From NCBI RefSeq assembly GCF_039654945.1, contig NW_027361722.1, positions 1,426,001 to 1,490,000 on the forward strand: 64,000 nucleotides of DNA, given 5' to 3'. The DNA is from Dendrobates tinctorius (Eukaryota). The position numbers and the translations under genes were made by a program. Below are positions 1,935-22,365 of the stretch, piece by piece; the first letter of the stretch is position 1; each line of letters begins with the position of its first letter. A model generated the notes under the pieces. That model searched no databases. It was not told the origin of the DNA and worked only from the letters and a program-made list of their open reading frames with translations.

Positions 1935-4703
1935 GGATGGTTTTGCACATCCTGATACTTCCGGTACCGGAGATATCAGAGTCCGTGTTTGTAATAGTTG
2001 TGGCATACGTGTGCCGCCCGTGCGCTGCATCGGTACTACACGTATCAGCGCCTGGGAATCAGCGATACTATTCCCCAGCGCCGGGTGCTGCAGATGGCTC
2101 TCATCATTCTCCCCTGCCCTGCCAGTGATCAATGCTAGCAGGGGAGGATGTTGAGAGTTGTATTCAGCTGATAACAGTGAGAGCATTCGGCGGCGGATGG
2201 GAGTATTCATCAGCCACCGCCACAGTTGTCAGGCAAAACTGACAACTGTGGGCTGCAACCCTCAGCTGTCAGCTTCACCAAGGCTGATTGTCAAGAATAG
2301 AGGGGTCCCCACGCTGTTTTTTTTAAAAAAATGATTTAAATAATTTAAAAACGGAATGGGGTCTCCCCCATTTTTGACAACCAGCAAAGATAAAGCTGAC
2401 AACTAGGGGCTGGTATTATCAGGCTGGTAAGGGGCCATGGATATTGACCCCCAGCCTAAAAATAGCAGCATGCAGTTCCCCAGAAAAGGCGCACCGATTA
2501 GATAAAACAAAAATGAAAAACAACAATATCCCTCACCTGTCCGCCATTCTGTCCCACACCGTAATCCATGTCTGGGGATTAATAGTTTTCAAGCTGGACA
2601 GTGCCAAGATGTGACTGTCCAGGCTGAGAACCATTGGTGACTTAGTGACCAGAGGTGACGTCATCAAGGTTACTGCTGGTCACTGAGGCTACATTCCCAG
2701 CCGGGCTGAACTGCGGTGACCTCAGCACCATGTGAAAAAGTCACCGCAGTTCAGCCTGTCTGGGAACACTACCTGGATCTCTCCAGCTGCATGTGTCGCG
2801 GGTGTGTGACAGTCACAACAAATGCATGAGGAGCCTGTCTGTTGGGCTCTCCATACATGTGTTGTGACAGTGAAACAGCCGCAACTCATGCAGCTGTGGA
2901 GCCGGACAGCTGATCAGCAGGAGCCATACAGGAAGCCGGATTCCATCTGCAGCTTACTCGGTAAGTGCTATAGCTTGCTGAATAAGGAGGGAGCCGAACA
3001 TATTTGCTCATCTCTAGTCACTGACTCTGCGCTTGCAGTAATTCCCTAGTGGTTCTCAGCCTGGACGGTCGCATCTTGGCACCGTTCAGGTTACACACTA
3101 TTGATCCCCAGACATGGATTACAGCGTGGGAACAGAACGACGGACAGGTGAGGGATATTGTTTTTTATTTTAGTTGTATTACAGGAGACAAGGGCTTCAG
3201 TGGAATTAGGCGTTGGTGAGTATAACTGTTTGTTATTTTTAAAGGGAACCTGTCACCCCCTCCAGGCGTTTTTAAGTAAAAGAGCCACCTTGTGCAGCAC
3301 TAATGCTGCGTTCTGTAGTTCAGAGAACTACTGCGCATGCCCAAGATTCCCAGCCCCGCAGTGTGAATAAATCATAAGCGACTGCGGGGCGGGATCTCTG
3401 GCCGCGCAATAGGAAGGCCAGGATGTGATGTGAGAGTACGGGCAGCGCTAACTGCGCATGCCCAAGAAGATATAGTACAGCGCAGGCGCCACGATTTCAA
3501 AAGAAGCTGAGGAGGCGGCGCCAAATACTGAAGAAAGAAATGATTGATGTATGAGAGGCGTCTGTCAGAGGGGGAAAGACCTGCCCCACTGTCAAAATTC
3601 AGGTATTTTTTACCAATTTTAAAAACGAATATCTCTGCGGTGGAAGGGAAGCTAAGTAAAAGAGCCACATTGACAGAATGCAGCATTAGTGCTGCACAAG
3701 GTGGCTCTTTTATTTAAAACCGCCTGGGGGGAGTGACAGGTTCCCTTTAAATAAAAATGGAAAAGTGTTTTGCTTTATTTCTAATAAAAGGCTTTATTCT
3801 GGCTGTGTTTATTTACCATATAACTATAGGATTAGTAATGGATGGGTGTCTTATAGACACCTCTCCATTACTAACCCGTGGCCTTGATGTCACCAGACAA
3901 TACAAAGGTGACATCAACTCCACAAATATGAACCCCATTTGCCACCGCTACAGGGCAAGTGGGAAGAGTCGGGAAAAATGCCAGAATTTACGCATCTAAT
4001 AGATGTGCCTTTTGTGGGCGGCTGCGGGCTGCTATTTTTAGGCTGGAGAGGGTCAATATCTATGGCCCCTTACCAGCCTGAGATTACCAGCCCCCAGCTG
4101 TCTGCTTTAGCTAGGCTGGTTTTCAAAAAATGTGGGGACCCGTCTATTCTTGATAACCAGCCTTACTGAAGCTGACAGCTGAGGGTTGCAGCCGCCAGCT
4201 GTCAGTTTTGCCTGGCTGGTTATCAAAGATATAGGGGAACCCATGTTATTTAAAAAATATATTTGATAGCTCAGGCTGCGGGTGATGAGTACTCCCATCA
4301 GCCGCTCCGGCTCTCAAATGTTATTAGCGGCAGCAGGTGTAGGCTGATGGGAGTAATAGTCCCATCAGCCACTGCCTGCTGTCGCTGTTATGAGTTGAAT
4401 ACAGCTCTCATCATTTTCCCCTGCTTGCACTGATCGCCGACACAGCAGAGGACCATGATGAGAGCAGTTTTCAGCAACCGGCACCAGGTAACATCGTGAA
4501 CAGTACCGCTGCTTTCCAGGCAACATCCCTGTGTATCATCCATGTGCACGTATGCGGGACACTTTGCGGCCTGTACGGTCCGTGGAAACACACTGACATG
4601 TGCATAGACTCATTCACTTGAATAGGTCTATGTGTGTAAGTGTCTCCGGTAGGTGTGAAAACTGTCACCACACGTACCGGAGACACTGATGTGAAAAGGG
4701 GGC
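1935..4703. mobile_element. Large foldback non-autonomous DNA element (Harbinger-like ends) filling HGD intron 6
   Basis: Diverged inverted segments: ~2245-2500 versus ~3990-4220, and ~2530-2640 versus ~3050-3160. Degenerate ends TTA|GG..GCACATC.. and ..GATGTGAAA..; boundaries approximate. Confidence 0.6.
3243..3746. mobile_element. TTAA-target MITE (T2/Kolobok-like) nested in the foldback element
   Basis: TTAA|AGGGAACCTGTCA... and ...TGACAGGTTCCCT|TTAA, with ~75-bp TIRs including AAGAGCCACCTTGTGCAGCACTAATGCTGC. Confidence 0.88.
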
Positions 4704-4713
4704 ACTAACTTAC

Positions 4714-4805
4714 CTGTCAATCATGGACACATTACAGGTGTAAATATGGATGGCGATCCCATTGCGCGACTTGGTGTCTCCAGCTCCACAGAGCGTGTAC
4801 AGTCC
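4714..4805 (-). CDS. HGD: HGD coding exon 6 (92 nt)
   Basis: [30 protein letters not shown](R); cag acceptor, gtaagt donor. Confidence 0.97.
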
Positions 4806-4944
4806 CTGAACAGATAATGGCAGAGATATCATAATAGTTTCTAAAACATAATTTGTTTATATATTTGCAAAAGTATAAGTATTGGCACCTGTGTTTGGTA
4901 TTGAGGCAACCTTTTATAAGGACTTTGTGCTTCTGTAATAAGAA

Positions 4945-5734
4945 GGCCGGCATTGATTTTTAGAACCGGACGCGCACACTATGGCTTTAACGCCTGTTGT
5001 GTATTTTGGGCGGTGGAAATGACCTGGGACAGATCTGATGACGCTGAGGGTATGTGACTGCATGAACGTATCACTATCATGTGGACATATGGGGGTTACT
5101 ATTATCGCCTTCTCGTGTGTGATTTAACCACCGGATGGTAGGTGGGGCCGATCTGTGGCAGTGCATCATGGGGGTTATTTAAATCCGCCCCTCTACGACC
5201 TCCGGTACCATCAAGCGTCATCTGGGTCTCGGTTATGGACATCAATAACAATGATTATTCCTCCTGATGAACCGCCACAGGCGGTGAAACGCGTCGGGGC
5301 ATACCTGCACATGATAAGTGAGCCTCTTTTACTTGGATTGATTATATACCCCTGAGGGGGGCTGATCTTTATCAGTTGGTCATGGGTGATCATGATGCGG
5401 AGGTATTATAGTTTTTATGTATTTTTGATATTAGTCTGGGGTCCTGCATTATTCATTTCTGCACTATCTGATTATTGTTTTCCCTCCTGTCTTATCAGGG
5501 ACTGGTAGGGGAGTGAGGGATAGTCCTCGTTGAGTGGGGGCGCCAAGATTTGTACTTTTAGGGTGCCAACCTCCACGGTCAGGAAGGTATCAGAAAGCCT
5601 TATTGTAGGGCTGTGCAGCATCCCAGAACAGGTCTTTTTTTCATTTGTGGCATTTGCCAATGATTCACTGGGAAAGGTGTTTTTTAATGTATTTTTGAAT
5701 AAATTTGGCTTTTAGGGGATTTACATGTTCGCAC
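4945..5734 (+). mobile_element. Probable Penelope-like element fragment (pLTR) with 17-bp target-site duplication
   Basis: Flanked by identical TGCTTCTGTAATAAGAA (4928-4944 and 5735-5751); contains a minimal hammerhead motif; AT-rich 3' end with AATAAA. Confidence 0.7.
5260..5299 (+). ncRNA. Minimal type I hammerhead ribozyme motif
   Basis: CCTC-CTGATGA-ACCGCC(ACA)GGCGGT-GAAA-CGCGTC^GGGG: intact core, 6-bp stem II, palindromic ACGCGT stem III, GUC cleavage triplet, 4-bp stem I. Confidence 0.8.
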
Positions 5735-5837
5735 TGCTTCTGTAATAAGAACCATTAAATGCATATGTTTGTGCCCCCCGACTTCACTGCAGATAGGACG
5801 CTATGGTGTCATCCACACGGCTCATCTTATGACTCAC

Positions 5838-5888
5838 ATCCACAAAGTCCTGCTTCTTCTCCCCGACCACAAATGGCTTCCACCTCAG
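5838..5888 (-). CDS. HGD: HGD coding exon 5 (51 nt)
   Basis: LRWKPFVVGEKKQDFVD; cag acceptor, gtgagt donor. Confidence 0.95.
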
Positions 5889-6102
5889 CTGCAAAAAGAC
5901 CACAAGAAAGTGATTAGCGCCCCACATAGTAATGGCTGATGTTACTGGATCCCGTTGTATAAGGATCTGTGAGGAGCAGAACAAAGTCTGGTGATCATTC
6001 ACTCGCTGTGCAAAATTCAGCACCCGTTCAATTCTTAATATATTTTTACAGTTATCAAAACTTCATGTGCCAAACATCACTAAAGACTCAGGACGTCGCT
6101 TT

Positions 6103-6642
6103 TGCGGTCTTGGTTCAGCTTTAGCTCAGCTTGGTCTCTGGTCGGCTCGGCCTCAGGTCAGTTCGGTCTTGGGTCAGTTCGGACTCGGATCGGGTCAACT
6201 CGTTCTTGGGTCAGTTCAGTCTCAAGTCTGGTTGGCTCGGTCTCGGATCTGCTATGTCTCGGGTCAGTTCAGTCTCTGGTCAGTTCGGTCTCGGGTGGGG
6301 TCGGCTTGGCTTCGGGTCGGCTCAGTCTTGGGTTGCCTTGGTCTTGGGTCAGGTTGGTCTCAGGACGGCTCAGTCTTGGGTCGGTTCGGTCTCGGGTTGG
6401 CTCAGTTTTGGATTGGTTCGGTCTCGGGTCAGTTCGGTCTCGGGTTGGTTTAGTCTCAGGTCGGTTCAGTCTCAGGTCGGTTCGGTCTCAGGTTGGCTTA
6501 GTCTCGTGTCGGCTCTGCCTTGGGTTGGGTCGGCTTGGCTTCGGGTCAGCTCAGTCTCAGGACGGCTCAGTCTCGGGTCGGCTCTGCCTTGGCTTCGGGT
6601 CAGCTCGGTCTCGGGTCAGCTCGGTGTTGGGTCGCTCAGCTC
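6103..6642. repeat. Degenerate ~16-bp minisatellite (GGTCTCGGGTCAGTTC)
   Basis: Direct inspection; accounts for the three stop-free low-complexity ORFs at 6067-6682. Confidence 0.85.
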
Positions 6643-6899
6643 TCTGAATAAGAACAGGTCATTCATTTTTGTATTTCCTTAGATAATGCACACTTGGGAT
6701 TTTTTTCCTTGACAGAAGGGGGTAATAAAGAATCACAGGTGGTCGGTAAGGTGGGCGACAAATAACTGAAGACTTAGTAAATGCAATGAGCACTTAAGCG
6801 TTAAAGTGATCCAGTCAGGACCCCCGAGCCCCCCGTGCTGCCAGCAGTTGTCTGCGTCTATAAATCCCTTTATTACACATGAGCAGATCTTTACAAACA

Positions 6900-7421
6900 G
6901 TAAATGAGGCCTGGACTAGTCAGAAATTTGCCCCACAATATTTTTGGGGGGGTTGTGCGCCATTTTCCAAGACCCGTAGCATGTTTATTTTTCGGCCGAT
7001 GGAGCTGAGTGGCGGGTTTATTATTTGCGGGGCGAGACGACGTGTTTATTACTACCACTTTGGGATACGTGTGACTTTATGATCGCTTGTTGCAGCCTTT
7101 TGTGAAGAAATGCAGTGAGCAAAAAAAGTAATTTTTTCCCATTTACAGATGGGGTTAATCGTTTTTATATTTTAATAGATCGGACTTTTATGAAAAGGAG
7201 GCGATTTGAACTTTTAGGATTTTTTTTAGTTTTTTTCATCTTTTAAAACTGTTTTCACTACTCGCCTTTCTTGTCAGCCCCTCGGGGGCTCGTAGCTGCG
7301 ACCGTCCGCTCGCTCATGCTATATACAGTACAGTGATGCTGTGGGCGGGATACAGGTGAGCTCCCGTCCACAGCTGCCAACACGCGCCGTACATGTACGG
7401 CAGATGTCATAAAGGGGTTAA
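6900..7421. mobile_element. Partial non-autonomous DNA transposon ending in AAGGGGTTAA
   Basis: Right end ...GCCGTACATGTACGGC...AAAGGGGTTAA is typical of TTAA-target elements; left end not identified. Confidence 0.45.
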
Positions 7422-7944
7422 TATTAATAGCCAATAATGTCTATAAGACATCAGTCCTAGTGTTCGATTGGTCAGATGCGTATACACAGGGAATATCTCA
7501 TCTCATCAACCAGAGCTGATGGAAGATATATAAGGGCAGATTCAGAATCAGTGACGAAAACGGACGGAAAATCGGGTTCAAAATCTCCGGCACAATCTGC
7601 TTGTCCCAAGCGACTCAGTGTGCTCCCTCTAGTGGTGGCTGCTGGTAGTGACGACTTCTGCTGGGGTTTTGGATTATGGAGAATTGAACCAGTGCAGAAT
7701 TTTAGACCAGTTGTGTGAACCCGGCCTAAGCCGCCCCTCAGGCGAGTGCCCCCGTAGTGACACGTGGTGCTTTGCTGCACTACCCTTAGTTGTGTTATTA
7801 CGTACACTAGATAGTATAATCTATATGATATGGCGGGACTAATGGCGTCATATACAGTATATGTATGTGTAAGAGGGGAGCTGAATAAGTCATCACACCT
7901 CCTGCACTACAGGTGCCAGATGGGAGTAGCTCAGCCCTATGGAC

Positions 7945-8372
7945 GGCAGTCTCACCTTTGAGGTGGGCTGTTACACCTTATTGGGGGCCGTCTCACCTGG
8001 TTTGGGGGGCTGTCTCGTCTGATTATGGGTCTCACCTGGTTGGGTTCTGGCTCACCAGATTGGGGGCCGTCTCACCGGTTAGGGGCTGTCTCACTTGGTT
8101 GGGGGCCGTCTCATCTGACTGGAGGCCATCTCACCTGGTTGGGGGCCGTCTCACCGGTTGGTGGCTTGCTCACCTGGTTGGGGGCCGTCTCACCTGGTTG
8201 GGGGCCGTCGTCTCACCTGGTTGGGGTCTGGCTCACCTGGTTGGGGTCTGGCTCACCTGGTTGGGGTCTGGCTCACCTGGTTGGGGTCCATCTCACTGGT
8301 TGGGGGCTGTCTCACCTGGTTGGGGGCTGTCTCACCTGGTTGGGGGCCGTCTCACCTGGTTGGGGTCTGGCT
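7945..8372 (-). repeat. 20-bp minisatellite derived from the HGD exon 4 / intron 4 junction
   Basis: Minus-strand unit (CAGA/GGC)CCCCAACCAG|GTGAG(A/C) is the same as the exon 4 end GAGCCAGACCCCAACCAG|gtgagac; ~20 copies that decay away from the exon. Confidence 0.92.
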
Positions 8373-8461
8373 CCACTTCATCCCAGTTATGAGTCAGGTG
8401 TTTTTGCTCATAAGCCTGATAGGGTTTATGGCGGACAGACGGCAGAATACGGTAAAGCCAA
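8356..8461 (-). CDS. HGD: HGD coding exon 4 (106 nt)
   Basis: (S)[35 protein letters not shown]; cag acceptor, gtgaga donor. Confidence 0.96.
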
Positions 8462-8731
8462 CTGAAAAGGTAAAATATGATAACTCCCATCATCCGGACG
8501 AGCAGTTTTTACATAATGCATTAGTGATCGGGGGGGGGCAGCTTTACCAAGCAGGACTGTAGGAAAGATGGATGCCAGCCTTTGTGGGTCAACAGCCGCC
8601 ATGTTGGTTGTAACCCAAATTTCCCAGGGCCAGATATAAAAAAAGCAATGACTGAATAGAAGAGGCGATTCATAGTTATTGGGGTCTTACTCCTCTTAAA
8701 GGGGCAGTGCCCACTGGATTCCATTTCCTTA

Positions 8732-8860
<129 letters not shown>

Positions 8861-9034
8861 CTACCGCTCTGTTCTTGTTGTCAGTGAATAGGAACATTCA
8901 GTTCTATATCCTGCGAGGGGAAGGATCTGGGGCTGAAGACACAATTCCCATCACTGAGAGCAAGAAAAGAGCTTTCAAAATGAAAAGCTTCAGTAAGAAA
9001 TGACATCTGCCAGAGACGTAAATCAGCCGCTCAC

Positions 9035-9106
9035 CTGTCCCTCCGGTAAAGATCCCGGACAGCGAGGATCCTCCGAGGAGAATTCATTGCCAAATCCAGG
9101 CATATA
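9035..9106 (-). CDS. HGD: HGD coding exon 2 (72 nt)
   Basis: [24 protein letters not shown]; cag acceptor, gtgagc donor. Confidence 0.97.
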
Positions 9107-9215
9107 CTGAAAAGCAGAGAGAGAAAAGTTACACGTGAGACGGCAAATGCTCCAAATCCCTGAGACCTGTCACAAAGCCATAGCGCTATATAATGATATT
9201 CTGTCCGCCTGCAGG

Positions 9216-16179: not shown

Positions 16180-17750
16180 CAGTGGCGGATTAAGTGGACT
16201 ATGGGCCCGGGGCTGTTCATAAAACCTGGGCCCCTGTACCCCCCTTCCCACCTGAGCGCTGCGGTCCCCGTGCGGGAATTGACAGCCGTACGGACCGCAG
16301 CACTTGGTTTGCTGCGGGTCCATACGGAAAACCCGCCACCATTCCACCATGTGAAGCCCCCACTCATCCCCCCTTCATCCTGTGAAGCCCCCACTCACCC
16401 CCTTCATCCTGTACAACTCCAGTCACCCCCCGTCATCATATACAGCCCCCAGTCACCCCCCGTCATCATATACAGCCCCCAGTCACCCCCCCGTCATCAT
16501 ATACAGCCCCCAGTCACCCCCCTTCAGCATATACAGCCCCCAGTCACCCCCCTTCAGCATATACAGCCCCCAGTCACCCCCCTTCAGCATATACAGCCCC
16601 CAGTCACCCCCCCGTCATCATATACAGCCCCCAGTCACCCCCCTTCATCATATACAGGCCCCAATCACCCCCCTTCATCATATACAGGCCCCAGTCACCC
16701 CCCTTCATCATATACAGCCCCCAGTCACCCCCCTTCATCATATACAGCCCCAGTCACCCCCCTTCATCATATACAGGCCCCAGTCACCCCCCTTCATCAT
16801 ATACAGGCCCCAGTCACCCCTCCGTCATCATATACAGCCCCAGTCACCCCCCTTCATCATATACATCCCCCAGTCACCCCCCTTCATCATATACAGGCCC
16901 AGTCACCCCCCTTCATCATATACAGCCCCCAGTCACCCCCCGTCATCATATACAGGCCCCAGTCACCCCTCCGTCATCATATACAGCCCCAGTCACCCCC
17001 CTTCATCATATACAGCCCCCAGTCACCCCCCCGTCATCATATACAGCCCCCAGTCACCCCCCTTCAGCATATACAGGCCCCAGTCACCCCCCCTTCAGCA
17101 TATACAGGCCCCAGTCACCCCCCCTTCAGCATATACAGGCCCCAGTCACCCCCCCTTCATCATATACAGGCCCCAGTCACCCCCCCTTCATCATATACAG
17201 GCCCCAGTCACCCCCCTTCATCATATACAGCCCCCAGTCACCCCCCTTCATCATATACAGCCCCCAGTCACCCCCCGTCATCATATACAGGCCCCAGTCA
17301 CTCCCCCTTCATTGTGTACAGCCCCCACTCACCCCCTCCCCCATTTAATTCATTTTATAAATAAAAAAAAATAAAAAAAGTTCCCCATACTTACCTCACA
17401 GCCGGCTCGCTCCCCAGCAGCGCCTCTGCTTTCAGCATCCTCCGGGACATGTCATCACGCACGCCCGACATCTGACCCGGAAGTACAGCCGGAGGGAGCC
17501 GGAGCTGAGCAGCCGTCAAGGTGACGGCCGTGCACAGCTCCTGGCCCCTCATAGAATGTGACGCGGGCGGCTGTCTGCTGCCGGCGGCGTCACAGGCAGC
17601 ACAGGGCACGGCCGGCCCTGTACAGGTGCTGGGGGAGCGGTCCGGGGGGCATTTGCCTCTCTGCCACCCGGCCCAGCCCGCCCCTGCGCCCCCAAAAAAC
17701 CTTGGGCCCGGGGCGACCGCCCCATCCGCCCCTATTAGGATCCGCCATTG
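16180..17750. mobile_element. Non-autonomous hAT element with an internal minisatellite
   Basis: TIRs CAGTGGCGGAT / ATCCGCCATTG; perfect 8-bp TSD CCTGCGAG (16172-16179 and 17751-17758). Confidence 0.9.
16420..17335. repeat. ~30-bp C-rich minisatellite (CAGTCACCCCCCTTCATCATATACAGCCCC)
   Basis: Direct inspection; produces the spurious 402-aa and 330-aa ORFs. Confidence 0.95.
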
Positions 17751-21989: not shown

Positions 21990-22004
21990 CTTGAGCTCTG
22001 CCAT
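21990..22004 (-). CDS. HGD: HGD coding exon 1 (15 nt, MAELK)
   Basis: ATG GCA GAG CTC AAG|gtaagt; same N-terminus and exon size as human HGD. Confidence 0.93.
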
Positions 22005-22365
22005 GTCCAGGTCCCTGTTCCTCCGCTCTGTGCTGCAGATTTCTGCTCTGCCAAGATTAAACACGCAGCTCAATGTGGATTTGATTAAACACAGGCCGGT
22101 TGCACAATTCTGCAGTGTGACTGGTGGAGGGGGAGGGATGGACCGCTCGGGTCACTGACAACAGAACGCAACATTACAGGTGTCTTCTCTTACAAGGACT
22201 CCGACCTCCCACCGTCCACCGCTGAGCACCAGGTCCGCACATCACACGGAGAAACCTTCATTTACTTGTGTACGTGTGTACAGTCAGAGCTGTAATCACA
22301 ATTCTACTGTTATCCCATGGCTCAAACATCAGTTCCCTCCAGAGCTGCATTCATGGTTCTTATTA

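Follow-up and report, generated by a model that had tools for sequence, protein, structure and literature searches.

Minisatellites whose first monomer lies over an exon-intron boundary have been described in the human genes F7, IFI6, CBS, LMNB2 and PDGFA (PMC1557585). In intron 7 of F7, where the repeat is a 37-bp VNTR, the most upstream donor is used alone, and every pseudo-site proves functional when those before it are destroyed (Borensztajn et al. 2006, PMC1557585). Raising the strength of pseudo-sites to as much as a consensus value of 91 did not make them compete, and the authors concluded that the most upstream site is selected by 5'-to-3' oriented scanning (PMC1557585). For IFI6 and CBS, the older work as relayed in that paper has the first two pseudo-sites also used, constitutively (Turri 1995; Yang 2000; Lievers 2001, via PMC1557585). 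Moreover, intron 18 of ABCA7 carries a C-rich 25-bp VNTR that opens with the donor of exon 18 (De Roeck et al. 2018, PMC5954066). Retention of one unit in that gene concerns 2 +/- 1% of transcripts, is out of frame, is raised by cycloheximide and is unrelated to VNTR length, and the skipping of the next exon is affected by that length (PMC5954066).

We describe here an array at the border of exon 4 and intron 4 of HGD in a frog. The array is real, its architecture has already been described, and it belongs to the known splice-donor minisatellites of the F7 and ABCA7 type.

The HGD gene and its donor array

HGD is encoded on the minus strand of the window, by which we mean the whole 64-kb stretch of DNA that was analysed. 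The translation of exon 4 matched residues 85-120 of the human homogentisate 1,2-dioxygenase chain 1EY2 (E 2.9e-15), and the encoded protein is plainly HGD. RNA evidence was taken from Logan contigs of four runs from four studies (of 23 runs found), mapped to 4700-9110, with the reporting share for joints set at 1%; runs X1 and X18 are from organism A, and runs X2 and X3 from organism B. The exons and the intron that matter for the present analysis are the following:

Near 21992-22015, minus strand: HGD coding exon 1, ATG GCA GAG CTC AAG and then GTAAGT.
9035 to about 9106, minus strand: HGD exon 2, from motif searches and RNA contig joints.
8733-8821, minus strand: HGD exon 3, from motif searches and RNA contig joints.
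8356-8461, minus strand: HGD exon 4, 106 nt and 36 residues, from the 1EY2 match and the joints 8461/8733 and 5888/8356 in four runs.
5889-8355, minus strand: HGD intron 4, 2467 nt, GT..AG; the contig joint reads "skips 2467, CT..AC" in X1, X2, X3 and X18.
5838-5888, minus strand: HGD exon 5, 51 nt, LRWKPFVVGEKKQDFVD, preceded by the acceptor AG (5889-5890).
4712-4805, minus strand: HGD exon 6, from motif searches and RNA contig joints.

The exons after exon 6 extend to about 1100. An earlier note on this DNA had labelled the exon as exon 4 and had placed the acceptor at 5888, and both assignments are right by the 1EY2 match, the motif searches and the contig joints. The last codon of exon 4 is complete, which makes intron 4 a phase 0 intron. 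At its other end, the gene has two alternative first exons, at 17395-17440 and 21992-22015, both on the minus strand. Exon 2 was joined to coding exon 1 in the contigs of X3 and X18, and in the contig of X1 it was joined to the other exon, which ends in ...GCCGGCTGTGAG/GTAAGT at about 17395 and is apparently without an in-frame HGD start (here and below, the slash marks the cut site).

The array itself and the donor from which it departs comprise four features:

8356-8376, minus strand: exon tail or "unit 0", GTGGAGCCAGACCCCAACCAG, row 0 of the unit alignment as set against rows 5-7.
8350-8358, minus strand: authentic 5' splice site CAG/GTGAGA, with 8356 as the final exon base; this is the donor of every spliced contig.
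7956-8355, minus strand: intronic minisatellite of 20 units, 16-23 nt long and mostly 20, when cut at each GTGAG.
8217-8276, minus strand: three identical C-type units, each an exact copy of the exon's final 15 nt with GTGAG attached, which provide the decoys at +99, +119 and +139.

Tandem Repeats Finder reported a 20-bp unit in 19.3 copies at 7981-8365 (79% matches, score 424). The 15-mer CCCCAACCAGGTGAG occurred 13 times with at most one mismatch, always within 7992-8365 on the minus strand, where shuffles lead one to expect 0.03 occurrences. Together with the table of units, these counts confirm what had been noticed at the outset, namely that GTGAG and the ~15 nt of exon 4 before it have been tandemly amplified. 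The array begins at the exon 4 donor, its unit being the last 15 nt of the exon followed by GTGAG, and an extra GTGAG (7951-7955) comes after the 20th intronic unit. Two unit types were distinguished, A-type (GTGAGACGGCCCCCAACCAG) and C-type (GTGAGCCAGACCCCAACCAG), the exon-proximal units being almost perfect and the distal ones degenerate. As the last 21 nt of exon 4 equal a C-type unit with one extra G, the array in effect has its start at 8376, within the exon. We also considered, and set aside, selection on the core GTGAG; this core is the best-kept part of the unit, but the shared ancestry of the units makes this uninformative on function.

With the authentic donor as +0, the donor scan found 11 perfect CAG/GTGAG(A/C) decoys, at +20, +40, +79, +99, +119, +139, +162, +182, +221, +320 and +359, the first six of which had been given correctly in the earlier note. 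Weakened copies of the donor lie between these perfect sites. Seven of the eleven decoy 9-mers read CAGGTGAGA, exactly as the authentic site does, and the remaining four read CAGGTGAGC; the decoy at +139 is the same as the authentic site from -15 to +8, that is, over 23 nt. The locus therefore displays what defines a splice-donor minisatellite: head-to-tail units in the range of about 10-100 bp, a first unit that takes in both the exon end and the authentic donor, and pseudo-sites that are identical or nearly so to the authentic 9-mer.

The unit, CCCCCAACCAG/GTGAG, offers a C-rich tract and CAG followed by GTGAG, and so resembles a recursive splice site. This resemblance is the one point in favor of a self-healing ratchet, in which the authentic donor would be spliced to the AG of an internal unit and would thereby restore the same donor, the array being removed stepwise with the product unchanged. 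The tract is without U, however, the match to a branch point is poor, and the steps would be shorter than usual vertebrate introns. Moreover, the intermediates would have the same sequence as a shorter array, which makes them invisible to RNA-seq. We regard such stepwise removal as extremely unlikely.

The coding consequences of decoy use can be read directly. Translation continued from exon 4 into the intron gives GTG AGA CGG CCC CCA ACC AGG TGA, and for every decoy a TGA stands at the eighth codon past exon 4. It had been claimed that the +20 donor shifts the frame and that all the farther donors include a stop; both statements hold, but the +20 donor makes a stop too, as it produces ACC AGC TGA over the junction, with the AGC TGA ending at the same eighth codon. 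The accompanying claim that enzyme is obtained only from the first donor follows directly from the sequence, as all decoys reach a TGA. The stops lie more than about 50 nt before a later junction and well upstream of many exon junctions, with at least six exons downstream. By the usual rule, an early stop upstream of exon junctions leads to nonsense-mediated decay (NMD), which is therefore predicted for the products of every decoy.

Donor choice in the transcripts

Each of the four runs provided one spliced contig, with exons 2-3-4-5(-6), and the joint 5888-8356 was present in four of four at the depth of the main mRNA contig (38.7, 7.0, 42.1 and 232). A joint from any decoy to 5888 was assembled in none of the four runs, at a contig level that a leak of a few percent, or forms removed by NMD, would escape. 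Contigs drop rare variants and cannot show absence, and NMD would also hide decoy products; from the depths, we roughly bound steady-state decoy use at a few percent. At this level, then, the mature mRNA is spliced from the donor lying farthest upstream, although minor use of others may exist. The earlier note had offered, as its alternative, that the cell strongly selects the first site, and it is with this alternative that the four contigs agree.

The depth over the border itself was also examined. In X1, the mean depth of 11.5 in bin 8252-8399 equals 38.7 x 44/148, so that the exon 4 contig explains all of it and nothing extends past the authentic donor in this run. In X3, the depth of the same bin is explained by the exon 4 contig together with a 50-nt contig at 8225-8274 (record 18), whose length is what a perfect 20-mer repeat should give at k = 31 when its cycle collapses. 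For X2, a collapsed contig of C-type units at ~8225-8274 is implied by the depth arithmetic; its depth would be 47.5, versus 7.0 for the mRNA and 0 over the remainder of the intron. This excess could come from a much longer perfect C-type run in that animal, or from the same 20-mer repeat at another locus.

The absence of decoy joints from these contigs bears on a regulatory reading of the array, according to which a sizeable share of transcripts would be spliced at decoys, chiefly +20 and +40, and degraded by NMD, so that the length or composition of the array would set HGD output and tyrosine catabolism. This reading can draw on decoys that equal the authentic site at all nine positions, one of them from -15 to +8, and on the early stop that every decoy gives with many exon junctions downstream. 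It can also draw on the short-period arrays of IFI6, CBS and ABCA7, which do use their first decoys, and on the lower enzyme activity that is reported with the CBS VNTR. Nevertheless, no decoy junction was recovered in the four runs, including the one with an mRNA depth of 232, which was deep enough to assemble an intron contig of depth 10. In addition, one-unit retention in ABCA7 is independent of VNTR length (PMC5954066), the decoys of F7 are unused (PMC1557585), and the array is missing from the other vertebrates found. We consider an attenuating function of this kind unlikely. The proposal that repeat number acts as a dial on HGD output through an NMD leak is thus left unsupported, though not refuted: contigs contain no decoy joint, the leak in ABCA7 is ~2% and independent of length, and the decoys of F7 are silent by virtue of position.

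What distinguishes the first donor from its copies was sought in structure and in sequence. Masking of the decoys by RNA structure was rejected, as the array shows no gain in folding over shuffles (z = +0.78). The probability that the 9-mer is unpaired is 0.004 for the first donor, a value that those of the perfect decoys bracket (0.0003-0.019), and a search of 4700-9200 against Rfam gave no match at the gathering score. As the 9-mers are identical, models of site strength cannot separate the donors. Position is what differs between them; moreover, only the first donor has a purine-rich stretch, GGGATGAAGTGGAG, directly before it, which may act as an enhancer.

Intron 4 was also met in unspliced form. 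A long contig of X18 (record 8) covers 6021-8191 at a depth of 10.4, versus 232 for the mRNA, and X1 has patches at a depth of 3-4, whereas introns 2 and 3 (8822-9034 and 8462-8732) had zero depth in four of four runs. Among introns 2-5, a long unspliced contig of X18 was found in intron 4 only. It could hint at slowed removal of this intron, but intron length alone may explain the extra unspliced signal. These observations are relevant to the possibility that the array works as a binding platform, its ~20 U1-complementary sites and C5 tracts recruiting U1 snRNP and poly(C)-binding proteins, and could in this way aid the definition of exon 4, suppress premature intronic cleavage or slow the removal of intron 4 as a detained intron. 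U1 snRNP and the poly(C)-binding proteins have roles of this kind, GGUGAG and CCCCC motifs are dense in the array, and the unspliced signal in X18 and, patchily, in X1 is what a detained intron might leave. On the other hand, intron 4 is about ten times as long as introns 2 and 3, which is enough for more unspliced signal, and contig depth is a poor measure. Among the vertebrates found, the array is not conserved outside this lineage, and mutagenesis of F7 is reported to have found no autonomous regulating element in the adjacent intron (PMC1557585). A platform function therefore seems very unlikely to us.

The same X18 contig bears on whether the array could be an assembly artefact, either a collapsed or an expanded repeat. 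Short-unit arrays are prone to mis-assembly, and another X18 contig (record 9) shows several small gaps relative to the window at 8207-8232, a point that also concerns the number of units between individuals, for which no contig spans the whole array. However, record 8 has its own substitutions (five in the stretch 7346-8191), and it is without 371 bp (6975-7345) and 6 bp at 7418 of the window, which are indels between individuals. Its own substitutions and the 371-bp deletion indicate that the array is present in another individual, and its unit count over the 12 distal units equals that of the window. The repeat contigs of organism B, in turn, match C-type units exactly. We find it scarcely credible that the array is an artefact. 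In intron 5, 808 bp of 4935-5744 are missing from an unspliced contig of organism B (X3 record 16), which has 66 other letters in their place; a roughly 790-bp intron-5 insertion of the window seems absent from organism B.

Origin of the array and its most probable meaning

In the exon-4 ORFs of nine other vertebrates (55-73% identity), eight read EPDPNQ followed by GT, and the ninth reads GPDPNQ. The array was found at this junction in none of the nine, all of them distant relatives, and their introns are unrelated and non-repeated. The conserved exon tail and the array-free introns indicate that the array is a later addition to an ancestral exon. The conservation across species that goes with regulated unproductive splicing was thus not seen in these nine distant vertebrates. 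One of the nine exon-4 fragments (P0001) looks mammalian. The 159-aa plus-strand ORF that runs over the array had no protein match at E 0.001.

The exon end itself probably provided the seed. It reads GTGGAG-CCAGACCCCAACCAG and then GTGAG, so that a 15-nt block lies between near-identical short repeats, and this microhomology is a probable starting point for slippage. The 20-bp unit was probably duplicated by replication slippage or unequal exchange and then amplified. Amplification would have been confined to the intron side, as growth into the exon would destroy the enzyme, and selection on the enzyme, by permitting intron-side growth only, would explain why the array starts exactly at the junction.

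Arrays of other kinds surround the locus. The window contains 19 tandem-repeat loci, amounting to about 15.6 kb or 24% of its length, and new minisatellites clearly arise often in this genome. With about a quarter of the sequence in tandem repeats, arrays that take in a donor might, on a rough estimate, arise by chance at tens per 50 Mb. Much of HGD intron 1 is occupied by arrays whose units measure 40, 30 and 32 bp. Intron 4 has a second and unrelated minisatellite at 6140-6634, with a unit of about 16 bp (GGTCGGCTCGGTCTCG, plus strand) in ~24 copies and 68% matches.

Altogether, we favor the view that an intronic minisatellite was born at the junction of HGD exon 4 and intron 4, that its decoys are silent or nearly so, and that it is a tolerated by-product, and we give this reading a probability of roughly three in four. 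At contig level, the array forms the first 400 nt of the intron 4 transcript and leaves with that intron. Among the identical donors, the spliceosome would take the one lying farthest upstream because of its position, and not because of sequence or RNA structure. By analogy with human F7 intron 7, from whose mutagenesis the rule comes, this would reflect either 5'-to-3' oriented scanning or exon definition. Any leak would probably go to the first one or two decoys (+20, +40), reach the TGA eight codons on and end in degradation by NMD; judging from the described systems, it would represent a small constant tax that is independent of array length, and not a copy-number dial. Most likely, the array arose by slippage in a genome with many tandem repeats and has been tolerated.

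Several points speak against this by-product view. Firstly, the short-period arrays of IFI6 (12 bp), CBS (31 bp) and ABCA7 (25 bp) use their first one or two decoys, and an array with a 20-bp period may therefore well leak. Secondly, earlier work on duplicated 5' sites, as far as it is recounted in PMC1557585, conflicts on which copy wins. Thirdly, the RNA support comes from assembled contigs, in which rare variants drop out. The long unspliced intron-4 contig of X18 and the lower enzyme activity reported with the CBS VNTR also weigh on this side. A broader proposal, and in our judgment a decidedly unlikely one, is that many minisatellites have been seeded at donors by a lineage-specific bias at 5' splice sites, with the +20/+40 leak of HGD as a heritable attenuator of tyrosine breakdown. 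If that were true, the number or the type of units would heritably attenuate this pathway.

Comparison with described donor minisatellites

The biology of HGD itself is most likely unchanged by the array. Its value lies in the natural test that it offers of the choice made by the spliceosome, as twelve perfect sites stand at a 20-nt spacing, one decoy agrees with the authentic site at 23 consecutive nt, and the first site is used. In addition, the positional rule of the F7 type would be extended from mammals to an amphibian, with a stronger donor and a shorter period.

F7 and the frog HGD array have in common a first monomer that spans the boundary, identical pseudo-sites, use of the upstream donor, and secondary structure not being the explanation. 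They differ in that F7 has a 37-bp unit, 5-9 copies and the weak donor UGG/GUGGGU, whereas the frog array has a 20-bp unit, about 20 copies and the strong donor CAG/GUGAGA. Moreover, 50 minigene constructs established for F7 that the decoys can function and that the scanning rule holds; for frog HGD, both would apply by analogy.

IFI6 and CBS resemble the frog gene in that donors are reiterated at the exon-intron border, and CBS is also an enzyme of amino-acid catabolism, whose repeat length is reported to be linked to activity (via PMC1557585). The 12-nt units of IFI6 are likewise reported to be in frame and to give stable isoforms, unlike the decoys of the frog array, each of which gives a stop.

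ABCA7 is like frog HGD in having a short C-rich unit whose first bases are the donor. In both, use of the donor in the next unit retains one unit, shifts the frame and makes a substrate for NMD, an outcome that is predicted in the frog. Unlike the frog array, which is known from sequence and contigs, that of ABCA7 has a measured leak, and its alleles reach about 10 kb.
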